The notes under the pieces: model-generated
The model's input: the letters and a program-made list of their open reading frames with translations, nothing else
Told to the model about the DNA's origin: nothing
The model's database searches: none
Shown: in pieces, positions 17,297 to 32,350 of the stretch
How positions within the stretch are numbered: the stretch's first letter is position 1
How the letters are laid out: the number at the start of each line of letters is the position of its first letter
From: Oopsacas minuta
Lineage: Eukaryota; Animalia; Porifera
Assembly (NCBI GenBank): GCA_024704765.1
Contig: JAKMXF010000351.1
Coordinates: 1 to 64,000, forward strand
Direction: 5' to 3'
DNA length: 64,000 nucleotides
Position numbers and translations under genes: made by a program

Positions 17297-19649
17297 CGTT
17301 GTCAAGGAAAAGATTAACGGTGTGCAATATTGAAATTGTCGCAACTATGATTAATCGTGTTAATCAAGGAGGTAAAAAATTCAATTAAACTTCACTAAAA
17401 TATATCGAACATGATGAATCGGATTTCACACTTTTGGATGAATCATATGTAAATTAACATTGACAAGTATTACAATTGGCATTCAAAAAGTTCCCAACCA
17501 ATCATATATATTTTGTAACTAAACAGAATACCAAGCTCTGTCTAAGTTCACATATTCTCGAAATAATCACCTTTATTATCTAGGATCGTTTTATACGAGC
17601 CAATCAGTCGAATAATTCATATTTATTGTATGCAGGTGGGATGGGGTCAGGTGAGTAGGGTGGATCTTCTACCTCGCTGACTCTCATTCTTTCCAGTTCA
17701 GACTTTACCAGCATGGTATTGCATGATGTATAGAATCGTGCTATAATCTCAAACCCGCACGCACTACTTTGGTATCCGCTCACAATAGTGTTTGTAAACC
17801 GTATATAAATATCTATTGACACAAAAGTCTCCAACTACCTCCTTGAAATTATTATGTGGGAAACCGACAAAAGGTTCCACTCAATATGTGCATCAAACAT
17901 ATTGTGTAGAACCTTATGATCCCTGAAATCAAGCCTCTAGTCAACTGGAAGCACTCCCCTTTTAAGCACCATACCAAATATATTTCCTTGGATAGCTGTT
18001 CATCGTATCGTTTCCAGGTTTCATCACCAGTACAGTAAACATTGGATTTAACGACACCCGTTTGGGCAGTCAAAAAAGGTCGCTATTTCCGATTTGTCGC
18101 TAAATCCGAAGAAGCTTTGAATATGCATTATATACCTGATAACACTCAAATTTATCCATGTCAAACGATGTAGTATACGAGGGGCTCTCAATGGGGCGCT
18201 GCCGCGCCCCCAGAGGGTGTTCGGAGAGCCCAAGTGGGCGATAGGTTCCAAAGGGCGAGGTGAGGGCGTGCTGGGAGAATATTTGAAATCATAAATATTG
18301 TCTAAATTTTGATAAATTATTTAATTTTATCAAGAGAGGGTTATATATAGTATAGTATTACATGAATAAACGATCCAGTTTTTCGATAGTCAAGCCAGTC
18401 AATTACTAAGGCACTTGTTTGAAATCAAAATACCGTGACTGTCATAAACAAATAATAATGAGTACTTAGCACAATGAAATTCAAACAGGATTCATATTAT
18501 AAATGCATCATTAGTGTCATAAATGACCAATAACAAACTCCTCCCGTCATTGATACTATTCGAATTAGTGTAAATAGGATTGGAGGAATATTGGAAATTC
18601 GAAATTGCCACTATATCTCAATTATAATTAATCACAAACTATATCATATTGCAAAATAGATAAATGGCTATTTCTGGTGAAAAGTAATGTCAACGATATT
18701 CCGTCGATTATTTGCGGTATGGCTTTATCCCTTCACCATCTATTTGTCAACTTCCTATGTGTCTGATTTGCGAACATGTTTTTCCAATGAAGCAATGAAA
18801 CCATCACGATTGAAAGAACATTTTTCGATAAAACATCCTGACTATAGCAACAAAGACATTGCTTTTTTGAAAATTTAAATGCTAAAATAGTGAAACGAAA
18901 TACCCTTTCTAACATGTCCAAGAAAGGAATACTAAAACAAAGACGGAATGTTAGCGCCATACAATATTTCCAATTTAATTGCAAAAGATGGGAAACCATA
19001 TAGTATTGGCGAGACACTCATTCTTCCTGCTATTTCAGAAGTTATCTCAACTGTGATGAACCAGAATGCCGCCGAGATTCTTAGATCCATCCCATTAAGT
19101 ACTGATACAGTTGCTAGGAGAATTGACGAGATGGCAAATGATGTGAAAACTCAGTTAATTCACATAGTCCAAACTACAGAATTTAGCCTACAATTAGACG
19201 AGTCAACTCTCTGTGACAATGAAGCACTATTACTAGGATACGCACGCTTTACAAAGACGGAGCAACATCAGAAGAGTTTCTATTTGCCAAATCACTAGTG
19301 ATCGATACGAGGGGAGAATCCATATTTAAAGTGGTTCAATCATTTTTTGAACACCACGAAATACCCTTGTCGAACATTATCGCATCCTCAAGGATGATGC
19401 TCTTTAAACGATTGGTTGCTATCGTGGAAGGCAGTTCCTAGCGTATTTTCCATACATTGTGTGATACACCGTCAACAATTGGTAACCAAGAAGCTTAGTG
19501 TTCAGCTAAATTCATCACTACAAGTAGTCATCAGTGCAATTAACAGTATCAAAACACGTGAACTAAAAGATCTTCTTTCTCGACAGCTTTGCCATGAGAA
19601 TGATGGACATTTCGAACAACTTCTCCTTCACACAGAAGTCCGATGGTTG

Positions 19650-22600
19650 CACAGTGGGCTATTATTGCGAATTACTAGTATTAGGGTTTTACGCGTTCAA
19701 TTTTAGAGATAGGCTTATAAAATACATTATTACTGTATAGTAAGTCGACTATTGCGGTTCTTTAGTTGATTTCAATTTTGTTGTATCACATCAGATTTTC
19801 AATATATGACGTAATCGTAATTACGATATACAGTAATACAGAAATCTAGATATTCACTAAACTGAGTTTTTATTAGAAGAAATAGAATATGAATATATAA
19901 TGGCTATGGTAACTGAAGAATAACTAACATACGAATATCTTACTGATGAATTAATGTTAAATGCAAGAAGAGTTCATCTATGGAATTTTGAAGGAGAGAA
20001 TCTCCATTATCAATATTATTTGTAACGTTCATTCAGAATTGGACAACCATAGATGTAGAGCCTCATTGCAACATCACTTAACCCACTTAGAAAAACTGAT
20101 TTCCTGCTCAAATGTGTTGAGAACTCTCGGATCAACTTATGTCCTTGTTCTAACCCTTTTTCAGAAAGACTACACAATCCTACCCTCTAATTTCTCTCAA
20201 TAAACTGATGGGCATGAGCCAAGAATTTGTGGAGTATTGCTAATAGATACCCAGGGAAAGGCTTGTAAGATTAGTATGTAGGTTTCTTGACTTAACACAC
20301 GAAATCTGTCTACATCGACAACTTCATTACTATAGCAACTCTGAGTAATGCAGATAGATTCCTGTGAATCTCTGTCAGAGCATCTCTATACACATTTGGT
20401 ACAAACGATAAAGCAATCCTAAAACACGGTTTTTTATATGAAAAAAATGTTCTTGCCATGTTGCCAGTGCTTGTGTTTCCACTTCCTCCTGGTTGGTCGA
20501 ATAATAAGTTCGTAAGCTCATGGATACGCTTGCATACTAAACCTCGATAATCTCGCACCATTTGATCTTCAGTCCACTTGGACTTTCCTGCTGCAATTCG
20601 GTAGATGAGGTTCAAAAACCAATCTACAATCCTTAGGTAAGAATGTAAAGGTGCTGCAGGAAATATATCAATGCCACTTGCAGATTCGTGTGTAATCCCA
20701 CACCGCTCCTTTGTATTGTAGCTCATCAGCTCTTTTCCATCAGAGGTTAATTGACGGATTGTCTCTTTGATATCCTCTATCGAACAATCTAAAGGAAACC
20801 CGCAAACCACTTTCGTAATGCTATTGATATCACTTCGGGTTGCTTTGCAGGCAATACATGGCGCTCCTCCTTTATCTGTCATTGTTGCTAAGGTTTTTCC
20901 GTCAAACATTGAAGCTTTGACTTCTACTTTAACATGGCCATTTAGGTGATCAAAACCATCCTCATTTAGTGAAACAATTTCAGGGTTTAGTAACTTGCTC
21001 AATTCTATCACAGTGTCAATAGTCTCCTTTTGGCTAATAAGTGCAACTGGTTGGTTGGAAAAACAGGAGTTAGGATGCCTATTTTCCCACAGAACATTCC
21101 CGAATCGATCTATTACCTGAAGGGGTGAAACCATGAAGACAATATAATTTGATTGGTCTATATTCAAGTCTGACAATAACCCAGGAGAGGAATGAGATCC
21201 AGAAGCATCCAGTCCATGCTTGATTTTGAGTGTTAATGGATAGAAGTGTGGTGCAGGAAAATTTAGCAAACATTCTTTTAACAACCGGTCAAAGAGAGAA
21301 ATTACATGTGATGAGTAAGATATATAGACCCCTATAGGATTGGAAACATTTGGATACCAGTCGAATGTTGGAACAATTGATTTTCTAATTTCACTAATTT
21401 TTTCCCAAGTTGCCAAAACGAGGCCTTCTGATTGGAGATAATATTTAAGATCTCTCCCTTTTCCTTTTCCCAGCTTAAGTTGCTATGCTAAGAATGTTGA
21501 TTTTTCTGGTGAAACTATGTTACTGAGGGTTGGTGTCGATTCTTCGTTATAGATTTTCCAAGCGATATTTGCGATGCCTTTAAAACCAATTTGTTCTACA
21601 GCTACAATATACAGGAGGAGAGCAACGTAGCGAATGACAGAAATATTTTCAAGTTGTGCTAACTGACGGATGGAAGTAAGTATCCCAGTCTGATCAAGCC
21701 TTATCTTCTTTGAACGAACTTGAATGTCATCAATTGATTTTCTCCTCTCTACATTTGGAACCAATATAGGACCGCTTTCTACATCACAGCCTGAAACAGA
21801 AAGGGATGATTGGGTACTCTTAGGTTTAACAAGCATCCATGGAATACTTGCACTCCACCATTCACCATCTAAGCTCTCAATAGATTTCTTACTCTTTCTG
21901 AAATTATGTGATACTTTAGACATTAGAGAGTATACAGAATGTCTCTTGTCTTCCTCGAGATTTAGTATACGCACCACTTCATCTGTTGCTTGATTGATAT
22001 CATAGTCGTGAACCTTTGATATGATAGCCAAGTCAAGACGTGTTTTCGGGCTTTCAGATACTATTGTTGCTTCAGCCATCTTTAAATTGATAATTAGAGG
22101 TTTAATAGGTTATCAAATTAATGAACTTGTATGCTAACTCGTAATATGCAGTATATATAAATAATTATTACGTTATATTGGTGTAAAATTACCATGTAAT
22201 TACATTACATTGTACCATAGCAACGTAGAAGTGAGAATAGAATTTGACAATATTTAATATGTTGCGCAATGAAGCGGTATTTGTACTTTAAATATAATGT
22301 TTATATTACTTGATAAGAATACATACTAAAAATTCAGGGTGAAACTAGTGGAAACAAATTTTGTTGCCAACAAGATGGCTTATGGCCGAGAGAAATTTCT
22401 ACAAAATTTTCATAGTATTGTATACGTAATATCTGATTAATCTTTTCGCTCCTGAAGAAATTCAACGATAGATTCAAATTTAGCGCACTCACTTTGCTTG
22501 GAAAGCATGTAAATGAACAATAGTATGCATCATAAATTCTACAGATTACTGAAATAGCTTCAAGCATTTATATAATGGATGTATAAACATAGAATACAGC

Positions 22601-22766
22601 AATGAAGTCCTACATTTGATTGACCACAAAAATAGAAATACTTAACTGTTTCATCTGATACTTTACATATAGCTTGTTGAATATATCTAGAATCTAATTC
22701 AAAATTCAAAATGGTATAAATTGAAGGTAAGAATTTGGGCCTAATGTACCCTAGTAGCCCACTGTG
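19650..22766 (-). mobile_element. RAG1-like / Transib-superfamily transposon, 3117 bp, both ends present
   Basis: Both ends begin CACAGTGGGCTA (12 bp identical, 14/15); TGGTTG duplicated on both flanks; removing it restores the hAT reading frame RWL-SKG. Confidence 0.95.
20016..22079 (-). pseudogene. RAG1-like/Transib transposase, about 690 codons, 2 in-frame stops and 2 frameshifts
   Basis: ORFs 21483-22079 and 20310-21416 are in the same frame, separated by one TAG; motifs KHGLDASG (D600-like), LWENRHPNS, SMFDGK (D708-like), CIAC, PLHSYL, GNTSTGNMAR, HKFLAH, LSEKGLEQGHK (E962-like). Confidence 0.92.
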
Positions 22767-24893
22767 TGGTTGTCAAAGGGAAACTTATTAAAACGGTCAT
22801 GAATTATTTGATACCATAGTCCAGTTTCTGGATGGCTTTAATCCCTAACTATCCGATGAAATCAAAATAAGAAAGCACGATATCGCTTATCTTGATGGCA
22901 TTTTGATAAGTTGAATTCGTTAAATCTACAACAGCAAGGCCAGGATGTAACTTGATCAAACGAAGTCTCTCGTTGTAGCTTTCATAAGTAAACTAGCTTT
23001 GTATAAGCAGAATATTTGTCGCAGAGACTTTTACCAGTTCCCTTCTCTGCAAGCAGTTCCTGATATAACTGATGTTCAACTAAGTACATATGCTTTGCAT
23101 CTCGAATCAATGAGTGAAGATATGTAAATCCGATTTAAGGACTTAACCCAGCTGATCGTACCAGATTGGGTAATGAACCTATTATATGTAGACCCACAGA
23201 TGGTAGAGTTAGAAATTCAAGAACAACTAGCTGACCTCCAAGCAGATATCGAAGCTCTAATAGAAATTAATCAACTTGGTTATTCGAGCTTTTAGGGTGT
23301 AAACGAAGAATATTTTGCGTATGCCGTTATTATGGCAGAGGATGAAGCTTCTAATTGTTGCATTTCCTACTTCCTACTTAGTTGAGAAGGGCTTTAGCGG
23401 AGTAACAAGGCTATATACCAAACAGCGAAATAGATTGCGGCACACGAAATCAGGCGATCTACGTTTAATGTTAACTAAACTTGAATCAGGTGTGGCAAAC
23501 TTGCAGGTAAGCACCAATGTCAGGGATCCCAATAATCAGGAACATCAGACATAATAATAAAAAACTGTTAATGAACTTTGATCTTCTATACACTATCATA
23601 ACTGATAATACTTTTACAAAGTAACGAATGTGTGGTCTAAATTTGTTGTAGTATGTTTAGTTAGTATTACGAGAAGGGGGCGCTGGAAAAATTTAAACTG
23701 CTTAAGTAGACAGTAAGTGGAAAAGGTTGAGAAACACTGTAGTATACTATGTTGTTCTATTATCATCATCATAATGTCATAAACATGATTAGTTTGACTT
23801 GAAAAGCTGAGTCGATTGCAGCAGGCCTCAATAACTACTGACTTTCTACCAATAAGTTTGCAGTTCGCTGACAAACTGAATCTGTTTCTCCGCACGAATC
23901 CATGACGATGAAATTTTAGCATTATCTTGTACGTACAATAGCTTCAAATTTGCATTTCGTAAGAAGCCAGGTGCTGTTGATTCAAAACAGGGGAGATTTT
24001 AATTGGTTTATAATTGAATTAATTATTTCAATCTGAATAATTTACTAATTACTACACTTTTCTGAAGTCCATGGTACAGACAGCCGAAAAGTCGTAATAT
24101 CCGATGGGATTTGCATGGAGCAGGCATAGAAAATATGTCGCTAAATGCATTGTGTCGTTATCTAACCGGTCGTTATACCCGAGGTATGGTGTGTGCAGAA
24201 TAATGCTGCAAGACTCTGGGCAAGCACAATGAGTCGTTATAAACGATTTGTCGTTAAAGCCGATGTCGTTAAACTCAATGTTTACTGTAAATATTCAAGT
24301 TAGAAGTCTGGGATCAGAATCCTCGTACTCTGAGAGTAGTTTTTTATCGCACATTTCCCGATTGTCATTTGGGAATTTATGAGGGATTGTGGGATCCACC
24401 TTGAAGATGTTTTCGTAACTTTTAGTCAATCTAAGAGAATGGTATAAGTAGCTCCCGTTGAAGACCCACACTTATAGATAGCCACTCAACTGTGATATGG
24501 GACCTATTCCACCATCTGGGCAATTTCGCGGTCATTCTGCTGATATAACTGCGGTTCTTTGTCGTCCGCTGCGATAGTCATCTTCTAACGACTGCTGCTC
24601 CTCACGAAATTGCTTGGACCACCCTCTCACACTGGCATATGAATGGCTAGCATCTGTATAAACTACTTCCAACCCGAAGCCTTTACAACCAAAACCAGGA
24701 AAAGTCCGAATTTTGATATATGCGAGGTGTTTGTTAAGTTCATGGGCTGATATAGAAACACCTAAGAAGCTTTAAACTCCATCTATGTAGCTATCAACAC
24801 TTTTATGCTTGTAAATTTACTATGCAGTCAAATCATTGAGTACTTTCGTTTCTTGCGATATATTTATGTCGTCAAGTAAGGAATAAGGTAGTA

Positions 24894-29170: not shown

Positions 29171-30821
29171 TCATGATCTATCTTCGGGTAATAATGATGA
29201 AGTCGCCCACTTATTGAAATCCCTTTCATCAAGGATACATGATCGTGCAATATTCCCTGTAGGATTGGCACCTCCATTGAACGAAGAAAGATCTAAGTAT
29301 AAAAACCAGTTTTCTCCAATAAGAGATTTAGCATTTGAGACATTGAAGTTTAGACCGAAGGAGAAGTAGGTTTCCATTTTTAAGGCCAGCATTTAGGTGT
29401 TAATCAAAAACATAAACCTCTTAAAATAGCACAAATAGCTATGCAGTGGTGGAGCAGATATCATATCGACGTCTGAAACTGGTGGATGAGTTAATCCATG
29501 CATATTTGAAATGGAAGCTTTAAGAATTCTTCGATAGTAGTGTCATCATGAAATATATCAATTGCATCTCTGATGTGTCTGTTGATGGGAAAACAATTCT
29601 CGATTAACCCCACATCTCTAAGCTACTCGTGGTTGGCTGTAAACAACTGACAAGACGCACCTCCCGCTCCACTTAAGATGCCTGACATTTTTCAATCAAA
29701 CATTGTTCTCTTGATTGAATGATTGATTATTCCTTGACTAACCTCTAATCCATTCTTTGCAAGAAATTTGTTTCATCTTTGATCAGTTTCTGAAATAAGT
29801 ACTTGACATTCTCAATAATCTCCTTATGAGAAATTAAAGCAGCTGGAGGAGAAAAAAAGGGAAATTGTGGGATAAATTAGTCCAAATTTCTGTTCTGATT
29901 TATCTATAAGTGAGAGAACTGTAACGCGATCACAATATGTGATTTAGTGGAAAAATTAGGATTAGAGTGTATCTGATCATATGGCCTATGGCTTCCAGAA
30001 CCATCGAGTCCATAGGCTAGCTTGATGGTAATTGGGAATTTTAGACTCTTGCAAGGGAGGAAGAAATTGTAGTAGTCATTCAGCGGTTTTGTACTAACTT
30101 TCAATATGGTATGCCTGAGCCGGTTGATTCTCTCAGTTCATAATGAGTTAACTTGATCTCGTTGGCTGAAGGAATTTTACTGCAGAATGCTGCCACCCTC
30201 TTGTAACCTAGAAATGTTAGTTCTTCAGGCTTGCAAATGCGACGTAGATCTGTATATTTTCCAAATTCAAGGAAATGCAACATAAATGCTGTTTTTTGCT
30301 ATAGGAAACTCCTTAGATTTGGTACTAGTTGTTCCAGATAAACTCCGCCATAAAATTTTACTGCATCCATGTATAAGCTTCGTCACTAATCAACTGTAGT
30401 GTAAGAACTGCAATTGTTTAAGGTTTGTATTTCATTCTCAGCTAGTATGAGCTCAAATAGTACAGACAGGCGTGATCTTAATAACTAAGGAATAGGCTCG
30501 AATATAGACTTCTTGCTGTGATTATCAACAGATTCGTCGAATCTTACATAATCAAATTCATCAAAGTTCAGTGTTATTGAATGGCTAGCTACTTTGTCCT
30601 GAGAAAAATATTACCTTCCAAGCAAATAGATTATTTCACTTGATAAAGGGCCAGCACAGAGCAGCGAGCTCAAGGAATTTCCTATGCAGGGCCATGAAGT
30701 CAGGTTCTGGGAAATCAAATAATTCAAGGGTTTCACGGGCTGCATTTTGAGAATTATAGTAGACTTTTTCGAGGAAATTTCTTGCTTCAATCAAATTGAA
30801 TTCTATAGAACAAAGTATCAA
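29171..30821 (-). pseudogene. Second, divergent RAG1-like/Transib transposase relic, 3'-truncated
   Basis: AYGLDGSGSH, TMFD*K..GAGGASCQL, GLTHPP..APPLHSYL, GGANPTGNIAR; many stops and frameshifts. Confidence 0.85.
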
Positions 30822-32350
30822 TTATCTCTTCAATATAGAAAATATGTCCTAGCTAGGCGTATCTAGTTGCACAAGTGGTTACTGGAGTGGTAATTCTATA
30901 ACTATCGAATTTGAAATTAACACCTAACTAGCGCGCTTCGCTTGTTAGGTTGCTGTGGAAGAGCTTAGGGCCTCCTGTTAGCCTAAATATTCAACAAATA
31001 CATTTCTTGATGCTTTGGTCTGCACGCGACGGGGATATACTCGGCCCTAAGTGCCTCGAGAATAATTTTATAATTTGTATATTGTCCGGGCCCATCCATA
31101 TTCAATTTAATTGTCTTCCGTGGAATAATGGAATTGCTACGTGGCTTTGGTTAGAAATCTTGGCCTCTATACATCAGATATGCAAAATTTGAGATTTTGA
31201 AATTTGGAGAATTTTGATTCTTTTTGAACAGCCACGATGACGTAATAATCAAATGATGAGTTAGTCGGAATCATGACATGAGAACATTTGTGAAATCGAG
31301 GGGTGGCTGTGATTCAAATTTCAAACTTCTATCATGTATATTGGCTGAGATTGCGGTAAATTATACATTAAATTTTGGTTATATTATCTCCTAGAACTTT
31401 TAAAATACTAAAGTGTCTACATGTCACATATCCACAATTCTTACCTATCCAACTTGTTACAAAAATTCAAGCGAGGGGACAATTTGGTGGAATTTGGAGA
31501 CACCAAAATTCGAACCAATGCAAAACAATTTGGGTCACCTCTGGTCATTTCCAAACTGAAGAAAATGAATATGTAATAGAAATATTTACAGTCTAACACA
31601 GTTTAACATTAAGTCATGATATGAGATCAGAGTAGAGTCAACAAATTTCGTAAATTCACAAAACAAAATTCTGACAATTCAGTATTCCACATTAATTCCT
31701 TGATTAATCCAAAGTAATTGAAAAACATTCATTTAATTCTATTTGTTGCAAATGTTTAATCAAATTTAAGATGCATGTGCAGGTTTTCAAACTATAAATC
31801 TTCAAATATATTTGGATAAATGAAGTAATAACCAAAATCGAATTATAGCAATTATGTTGCTATAGTCAAAAGATGAAATATATGAAACAAATAAGTATAT
31901 TTATATAAATCTATATTCTAAGGTTTACGATAGAGCTGAATATGAATATGATATTCCTTTTCGGATATAACTACATCGAAAATTGGTCCTAAATCCCCGA
32001 TTGCCCACTATATATGCATATCTAGTAGTAAAAACGCTTTTAAATTGGCTAGAAAAAGGCTTGAAGTTTAATTGCAAAATATTTCACTTGCTACTTGCTA
32101 CATACTACTTGTATTTAATTGAAAGAATAAATGTACGATTAAATTTCCTGAGCGTCAGGCAAAAAGAATAGTAGCAAGCAAATTCCCTGGACGCCTTTAG
32201 AAACTGAAATAAGCAACTGGCAAACAAATAATATGAATAATTAGAATATAAGGTCACATACTCATAATTTTGAGTCGCATGACCCCCCCCAACCTCGATC
32301 CGAATGTGTGCCAAAAATGGAAGTAAATGTAAAAAGGTAGTGAGTAAATA

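Follow-up and report, generated by a model that had tools for sequence, protein, structure and literature searches.

A RAG1-like element of the glass sponge Oopsacas minuta, very probably a decayed Transib transposon with asymmetric ends and a 6-bp target-site duplication

What kind of element begins and ends with CACAGTG, the exact heptamer of the vertebrate recombination signal sequence (RSS), and carries a single RAG1-like gene? The question is raised by positions 19650-22766 of a 64,000-nucleotide stretch from the glass sponge Oopsacas minuta (assembly GCA_024704765.1, contig JAKMXF010000351.1, positions 1 to 64,000; the whole stretch is called the window), which a first-pass annotation had read as a RAG1-like transposon without RAG2, possibly undescribed. 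Our analysis indicates that the locus is very probably an inactivated copy of an autonomous transposon of the Transib superfamily, from a clade with a 6-bp stagger, which inserted into a hAT-like host and then decayed. It is assigned to Transib, the family that gave rise to the antibody-gene recombinase RAG1, on the grounds that it has one RAG1-like gene and no RAG2.

Element borders and asymmetric ends

The element spans 3117 bp and is bounded by perfect 12-bp inverted ends that begin with CACAGTG. The features at its borders are as follows.

19416-19649, + strand: insertion host, a fragment of a FAM200/GTF2IRD2-like (hAT-type) transposase open reading frame (ORF), decayed and cut between ...HTEVRWL and SKG...
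19644-19649, + strand: left copy of the target-site duplication (TSD), TGGTTG; same hexamer at 22767-22772
19650-19661, + strand: terminal inverted repeat (TIR) at the gene-3′ end, CACAGTGGGCTA; heptamer CACAGTG at 19650-19656
19678-19686, + strand: second end box, GTATTAGGG, 21 nt after the heptamer at the gene-3′ end (long spacer)
22739-22747, - strand: second end box, ACATTAGGC, 12 nt after the heptamer at the gene-5′ end (short spacer)
22755-22766, - strand: TIR at the gene-5′ end, CACAGTGGGCTA; heptamer at 22760-22766
22767-22772, + strand: right copy of the TSD, TGGTTG; same hexamer at 19644-19649

The claim that the two ends are identical and carry CACAGTG held up well. A scan of the whole 64-kb window found exact matches to CACAGTGGGCTA at the two element ends only, and the other copies, as read from the loose ends of public-run contigs, leave the window sequence at precisely 19650 and 22766. 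CACAGTG, a CAC heptamer of the CACAATG-like kind that Transib ends begin with, is present at both ends of the window copy and of all its relatives. The window has a GC content of 35% and is eukaryotic in character. The nearest ESM Atlas clusters of the interrupted host ORF are FAM200/GTF2IRD2-like (score, 0.93; 170 shared features), and a Pfam search with this ORF gave no match. The Transib is nested in this hAT-like element.

Further inspection of the ends showed the same order of parts on both sides: the heptamer, a shared GGCTA, and a second box, (G/A)(T/C)ATTAGG(G/C), placed at different distances. The box and both spacings are kept in the other copies and in three relatives of about 72% identity (L002, L007, and L005), in which the spacer sequence and the interior have diverged. 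A Transib of a different lineage, L012, has a box of its own with the same 9-bp offset between its ends. Transib ends with this 12/23-like asymmetry have been known since 2005 (PMC1131882) and were reported again in 2022 (PMC9435367). The arrangement resembles that of the vertebrate RSS in having two-box ends with a spacer asymmetry of about one helical turn, 12 and 21 in the window compared to 12 and 23 in the RSS. However, the distal box is ATTAGG-like in the window element, whereas the RSS nonamer is A-rich. In ProtoRAG, too, a conserved region adjoins the heptamer, but the ends are nearly symmetric and lack a distal box.

Transposase homology, fold, and closest relatives

A single ORF series occupies 20019-22079, and the other 0.37 and 0.69 kb of the element contain short ORFs only. 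According to the window ORF list, the 3.1-kb element contains no RAG2-like kelch ORF and has no room for one, in agreement with the earlier description of a RAG2-less, RAG1-like element. The gene and its recognizable parts are as follows.

20019-22079, - strand: Transib transposase pseudogene; ATG at 22079; the intact family ORF has 741 codons
21840-22043, - strand: N-terminal three-helix domain, residues 13-80; predicted local distance difference test (pLDDT) score >90; weakly helix-turn-helix (HTH)-like
21540-21755, - strand: nonamer-binding domain (NBD)-like domain, residues 109-180, starting VERRKS; VIA match to the RAG1 NBD
21207-21209, - strand: first catalytic Asp, RAG1 D600 equivalent; GAT in GLDASGSH, the G.DGSG column of Transib alignments
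20901-20903, - strand: second catalytic Asp, RAG1 D708 equivalent; GAC in MFDGK, invariant column D194 of alignment A7
20847-20858, - strand: CIAC zinc ligands, RAG1 C727/C730 equivalent; in A7, C209 is invariant and C212 is at least 90% conserved
20214-20231, - strand: HKFLAH zinc ligands, RAG1 H937/H942 equivalent; from the C-terminal profile alignment and codon reading
20148-20150, - strand: catalytic Glu, RAG1 E962 equivalent; GAA in GLEQGHK

The D-D-E triad and the C2 and H2 zinc ligands stand in RAG1 order, and their codons lie where the first-pass annotation had placed them. HMMER aligned the catalytic Glu to the Glu of the RAG1 motif "GNES" and of the BbRAG1L motif "GNEA"; in the published RAG1 numbering, the GNES Glu is E962 and is followed by S963 (10.1101/2023.08.20.553239). 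Nearby, at 20157-20159, the window copy encodes Lys, whereas Glu is found in nearly all other copies (SEKG for SEEG). A reading of this Lys as a substitute for the catalytic Glu was dropped; its RAG1 equivalent is E959, which precedes E962 by three residues.

Sequence searches linked the gene to Transib most strongly. The 390-residue core alone, as a single sequence, matched the HzTransib transposase of Helicoverpa zea (6PQN) at an E value of 4.8e-11. For profile searches, the N-terminal, core, and C-terminal regions were treated separately, as an alignment that mixed pieces (A3) was misaligned. Against PDB sequences, the core profile of the family had HzTransib as its sole match (6.8e-13), with no RAG1 or RAG1L, while the C-terminal profile matched HzTransib (4e-8), BbRAG1L of amphioxus (1.1e-7), and vertebrate RAG1 (4e-4 to 5e-3). 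The structure-prediction check proposed in the first-pass annotation gave a concordant picture. An AlphaFold model of the core had a pLDDT of 88.8 and a predicted template modeling (pTM) score of 0.83, and in a Foldseek search with this model, all 49 matches with an E value of ≤1e-10 were RAG1, RAG1L, or HzTransib, the next match being at 0.015. With VIA, the core model aligned to mouse RAG1 473-899 at Z 22 to 23 (371 to 375 of 390 residues), to HzTransib at Z 19.9 (331 residues), and to BbRAG1L at Z 19.2 (372 residues).

These matches also bear on whether the element might belong to a neighboring superfamily that shares the C2C-H4H DDE core, namely, Chapaev or the CACTA-Mirage-Chapaev (CMC) group. 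Elements of the CMC group also have CA...TG termini and zinc motifs (PMC12730594), and a TSD other than 5 bp is atypical for a Transib. However, the direct, significant sequence matches to HzTransib, BbRAG1L, and RAG1 and the full-length fold match make such an origin highly improbable, and CMC TSDs are 2 to 4 bp long, not 6 (PMC12730594; 10.64898/2026.08.26.747230), Chapaev and CMC being compared here by their published description.

Another rival reading makes this a missing link, either an element of RAGL type or a Transib lineage with a specific closeness to RAG1/RAG1L beyond that of other Transibs. The spacing of the zinc ligands, taken from the second Cys of the CxxC to the first His of the HxxxxH, is 207 residues, the same as in RAG1 (C730 to H937), compared to 165 in HzTransib. 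The family has about 37 residues more than HzTransib after the CxxC, and its alignment to RAG1/RAG1L is about 40 residues longer than that to HzTransib. In favor of a missing link are the zinc-binding domain of RAG1 length, the CCGHC-type tail, the asymmetric ends, the NBD-like domain, and the longer alignment of the model with RAG1 than with HzTransib, and Tao et al. found Subgroup I Transibs with such features nearer RAG1L than the HzTransib-like Subgroup II (PMC9435367). However, the long spacing and the knuckle are common to most long database Transibs. The database Transibs as a whole form a short-spacing class (161 to 172, without the knuckle) and a long-spacing class (207 to 230, often with it). 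In an unrooted tree of the database matches, which contained no RAG1, the short-spacing, HzTransib-like class was a 100/100 clade, and the window family fell in the long-spacing majority, paired with the L012 protein P0243 at 93/90 on a long branch. In addition, a 3.1-kb single-gene element cannot accommodate a RAG2-like ORF, the core profile found HzTransib only, and the identity is higher to HzTransib (19 to 21%) than to BbRAG1L (16 to 18%) or RAG1 (13 to 15%). Neither the window copy's own pieces nor the family's core pieces matched Pfam RAG1, whereas krill-type Transibs from several other lineages scored 44 to 48 bits across the core; the open C-terminal piece of the copy L004 scored 24.4 bits. 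A profile search for named RAG1/RAG1L proteins returned krill-type relatives only. On these grounds we regard the missing-link reading as quite improbable. By sequence, the family is nearer to HzTransib than to RAG1, and no special closeness to RAG1 was demonstrated.

The N-terminal 198 residues were modeled at a pLDDT of 83.7 as two helical units. The first, residues 13-80, gave weak structural matches to the Nab2 N terminus (Z 3.8), POU, and SANT, and its model suggests a possible additional DNA-binding domain. Other long Transibs also have a segment at this position. The second unit, residues 109-180, had zebrafish RAG1 408-476 (6dbw_C) as its top VIA match, at Z 5.8 with a root mean square deviation of 2.7 Å over 68 residues, the next match being at Z 3.8. 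It aligned with the GRPK/RRK-containing segment of other long Transibs, in the right position and order. A Foldseek search with the N-terminal region gave nothing significant, and the NBD match came from VIA re-alignment only. At the other end of the protein, the zinc knuckle, CSTCGQVGHQKNC in L004 (L004:7614-8198), has related sequences in L002 and L003 and a weak zf-CCHC match.

Comparison with described systems showed that, by its features (zinc-ligand spacing, knuckle tail, NBD-like domain, and asymmetric ends) and not by a tree, the family is Subgroup I-like. As in Subgroup I Transibs, there is a single gene, with asymmetric ends, a CTT1/CCGHC-type tail, and an NBD equivalent, and, judged by the spacing of 207, the family keeps the zinc-binding-domain (alpha11-alpha12) segment lost by Subgroup II (PMC9435367). 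It differs from them in its 6-bp rather than 5-bp TSD, in its NBD-like domain, which opens with ERRK and not GRP(R/K), and in its hexactinellid sponge host, a phylum unnamed in the survey text (PMC9435367). HzTransib is the best sequence match and has the same fold, D-D-E and C2/H2 zinc site, and CAC-heptamer ends, but at about 500 residues it lacks some 40 zinc-binding-domain residues, the NBD-like N terminus, and the knuckle tail, and it makes a 5-bp TSD. BbeRAG1L of ProtoRAG (RAGL-B; 6B40) shares the fold, the C-terminal match (E, 1e-7), and the CCGHC tail, but ProtoRAG has a RAG2L gene and a 5-bp TSD, whereas the window element has no second gene. With vertebrate RAG1 and its 12/23 RSS, the element shares CACAGTG, an NBD-like fold, identical zinc-ligand spacing, and the D, D, and E residues; in contrast to RAG1, which is a host recombinase, it is mobile and lacks both RAG2 and a RING N-terminal region. 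The window family is an ordinary one and not a new kind of element: NBD-like domains, CCGHC tails, and asymmetric ends have already been described (PMC9435367; 10.1101/2023.08.20.553239; PMC1131882), and its only departure from the known pattern is the 6-bp TSD. Thus, of the suggestion that the element is undescribed, one part survives: no description of Transibs in sponges was found in the literature searched. Its features, on the other hand, are known, and UniRef already labels sibling proteins.

The likely mechanism can be sketched by homology with HzTransib, BbRAGL, and RAG. The intact family would encode a single 741-residue transposase with no RAG2-like partner, made up of the three-helix N terminus, the NBD-like domain, an RNase H/zinc-binding core (D-D-E, CxxC, and HxxxxH), and a CCHC knuckle. 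A transposase dimer would pair a short-spacer end with a long-spacer end (CACAGTG plus the (G/A)(T/C)ATTAGG box at 12 or 21 nt), nick at the heptamer border, and form hairpins on the flanking DNA. The excised element would then be inserted by staggered strand transfer, the stagger in this clade being 6 bp and not the canonical 5. The anatomy, homology, fold, copy family, lesions, and TSDs of the element are directly documented; the chemistry, the pairing of the ends, and the assignment of domains to boxes are extrapolated from these homologues.

Copy family and decay

The closest proteins to the window gene are fragmentary O. minuta gene models (61 to 89% identical), and more distant O. minuta proteins appear in UniRef under the names "RAG1 RNase H domain-containing" or "DNA-mediated transposase." Six further copies of 90 to 95% identity were found in GCA_024704765.1 (L001, L003, L004, L006, L008, and L009), the pairwise values being 89 to 96%, and relatives of about 72% identity (L002, L005, L007, L010, and L011) were located in two ENA assemblies, ERZ25071281 and ERZ25766962. 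For L005 and L011 the other end, and for L004 the right tip, was searched for and not found. In public-run contigs, the depth inside the element is 15 to 25 times the flank depth, and internal-deletion derivatives occur among the contigs. The family thus has tens of copies in O. minuta, at least seven of which were sequenced in this analysis.

The majority consensus of seven copies is 3204 bp long and has one open frame of 741 codons, in place of the roughly 690 codons first estimated. The family can therefore be reconstructed on paper, as had been proposed. The window copy is 97.9% identical to this consensus (2.1% diverged). Its coding lesions, called against the consensus and against reads, are as follows.

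21483-21485, - strand: premature stop TAG; Tyr in other copies
20332-20334, - strand: 1-bp deletion causing a frameshift (-1 near 20333); extra T behind 20332 in many other copies
20233-20237, - strand: 2-bp deletion (-2 near 20236) that restores the first frame; GT behind 20233 in other copies
20187-20189, - strand: premature stop TAG; GAC Asp in essentially all others (20187 C>G, 20189 A>C, about 100% depth)
20028-20030, - strand: 83-bp deletion private to the window copy; every other copy is about 80 bases longer here, loose ends at 20028/20029

Read in a single frame from the ATG at 22079, the gene reaches a stop at 21483-85, followed by 390 open codons (20313-21482), and is then fragmented. 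The two stops and two frameshifts of the first-pass annotation are real, the other copies being mostly open or in frame at these positions. However, its count of only four lesions was too low, because the 83-bp deletion, which causes a frameshift and the loss of the C-terminal zinc knuckle (CCHC, of the CCGHC type), had been missed and brings the coding lesions to five. The window copy also has a 1-bp deletion in its 5′ untranslated part. On the proposed history, the copy would have entered the hAT-like element and then decayed through the two stops, the two frameshifts, and the 83-bp deletion of the knuckle tail.

Homology is the only thing that would suggest a domesticated RAG1-like gene serving the host, as opposed to a transposon. 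It is hardly conceivable here, given the TIRs and TSD, the many copies at different loci, and the stops, frameshifts, and deletions in every copy seen.

Several other observations were made on this family and its surroundings. First, L004 is split 24 to 32 bp from its gene-3′ tip by a pogo/Tc5-like transposase insertion (DDE_1, HTH_Tnp_Tc5; L004 8487-10821). Second, internal-deletion derivatives that keep both ends are candidate nonautonomous elements; their joints in reads lie at window 19999-22404, 21162-21978, and 19846-20602 and at L001 4309-6436. Third, two gene models hold pieces of the Transib ORF that are 85 to 90% identical, KAI6658842.1 (P0005; L003 6001-12643), annotated as "Fibronectin type-III domain-containing protein," and KAI6659434.1 (P0007; L006 6001-6824), annotated as "Out at first protein." From their sequences, both look like transposon DNA absorbed in host gene predictions. 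Finally, the window contains a second, more decayed Transib-like element at 29171-32310, with one end, CACACATTCGG (reverse complement at 32310), and no recognizable other end.

Length of the target-site duplication

Perfect 6-bp TSDs flank four copies: TGGTTG in the window, CCTTTG in L002, CCTTAG in L007, and CGACTA in L010. The hexamers of L002, L007, and L010 do not extend to 7 bp and show no match in a 5-base register. Decayed TSDs were seen in L001 and L003 (5 of 6 positions each) and L009 (4 of 6). Transibs are known for a preference for GC-rich targets; in these few sites, the TSDs are about 33 to 50% GC, compared to 35% for the window. The empty site can also be read directly. Contigs of uninterrupted paralogues of the host element run from 19649 straight into TCAAAG, and hence TGGTTG is single there.

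A 5-bp TSD is the Transib hallmark (PMC1131882) and is typical of Transib, RAGL, and RAG (PMC1131882; 10.1101/2023.08.20.553239), which raises the possibility that the TSD here is really the canonical 5 bp and that the sixth base is due to chance or is element terminal. L003 would fit this reading, since five of its bases (TACAG) match perfectly and the outer one does not. However, in each of four independent insertions the hexamer that closes one flank also opens the other, and a 5-base register matches in none of the four. With a 5-bp TSD, the extra base would have to be borne by the element, yet it differs among copies (T, C, C, or G) and so lies outside it. The divergence of the other copies' flanks exactly at 19650 and 22766 argues for the same border. 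A canonical 5-bp TSD is therefore unlikely.

As a control, the same reading was applied to L012 (1173-4237; ENA ERZ25071281), the Transib of a different lineage, which is 3065 bp long and has an apparently intact 703-residue ORF, P0243, the nearest full-length relative in the data. Here it yielded an exact 5-bp TSD, AAATC. The ends of this element are CACAGTGGCACGA, and its second box, GGAAATTTG, lies 11 and 20 nt from the heptamer. An end matching that of the L012 element is also found in O. minuta, at L004 4398.

Published TSDs in the wider group range from 2 to 5 bp (PMC12730594), a 2026 preprint reports insect Transibs with 3-bp and TA variants (10.64898/2026.08.26.747230), and no report of a 6-bp TSD for a Transib was found in the literature searched. 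We lean modestly toward the view that, in a sponge-associated Transib clade, the stagger of strand transfer grew from 5 to 6 bp, the clade keeping the canonical CACAGTG, the 12/21 two-box ends, the NBD-like domain, the RAG1-length zinc-binding domain, and the CCGHC tail.

Some points weigh against this account of the family. First, the sample behind the 6-bp length is small, as nine insertions were examined. Second, two of the nine two-ended copies, L006 (4146-7342) and L008 (4152-7311), have no TSD at all; inter-copy recombination or a rearrangement of the flank is a possible cause. Third, the NBD match is modest. Its Z of 5.8 is middling for a helical domain, a profile search of the N-terminal/NBD region against PDB sequences found nothing, and the GRPR/K motif of RAG1 and RAGL family A reads ERRK in the window family, ERRK(S/P) being the form in all three sponge families. 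The first-pass claim of an NBD-like N terminus therefore stands as a fold match and not as a sequence match. Finally, no intact copy was found: every copy examined was a pseudogene, and cluster look-ups in the database gave no long protein of the window family. Activity of the family is thus historical only.

Transib, RAGL, and RAG have been treated as a 5-bp group, and TSD length reflects the geometry of the strand-transfer complex. Nozomi-related insect Transibs indicate that TSD length can change within Transib with the catalytic core conserved (10.64898/2026.08.26.747230), but those elements have shorter TSDs (3 bp or TA) and ends starting with G, whereas the window family has a longer one (6 bp) and the canonical CACAGTG. 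If true, a 6-bp clade with an otherwise RAG1-like architecture would mean that the stagger geometry can become longer and not only shorter, and its TSD would be the first in the RAG/Transib/CMC group to exceed 5 bp. The 6-bp family and the 5-bp P0243 element would then form a natural pair for mapping the determinants of stagger in RAG-type transpososomes. Together, the results add a Transib family in a glass sponge and evidence for a 6-bp TSD. They extend well-preserved, two-box, asymmetric-ended Transibs to glass sponges, which are among the earliest-branching animal lineages, and this occurrence bears on the age of the 12/23-like arrangement.

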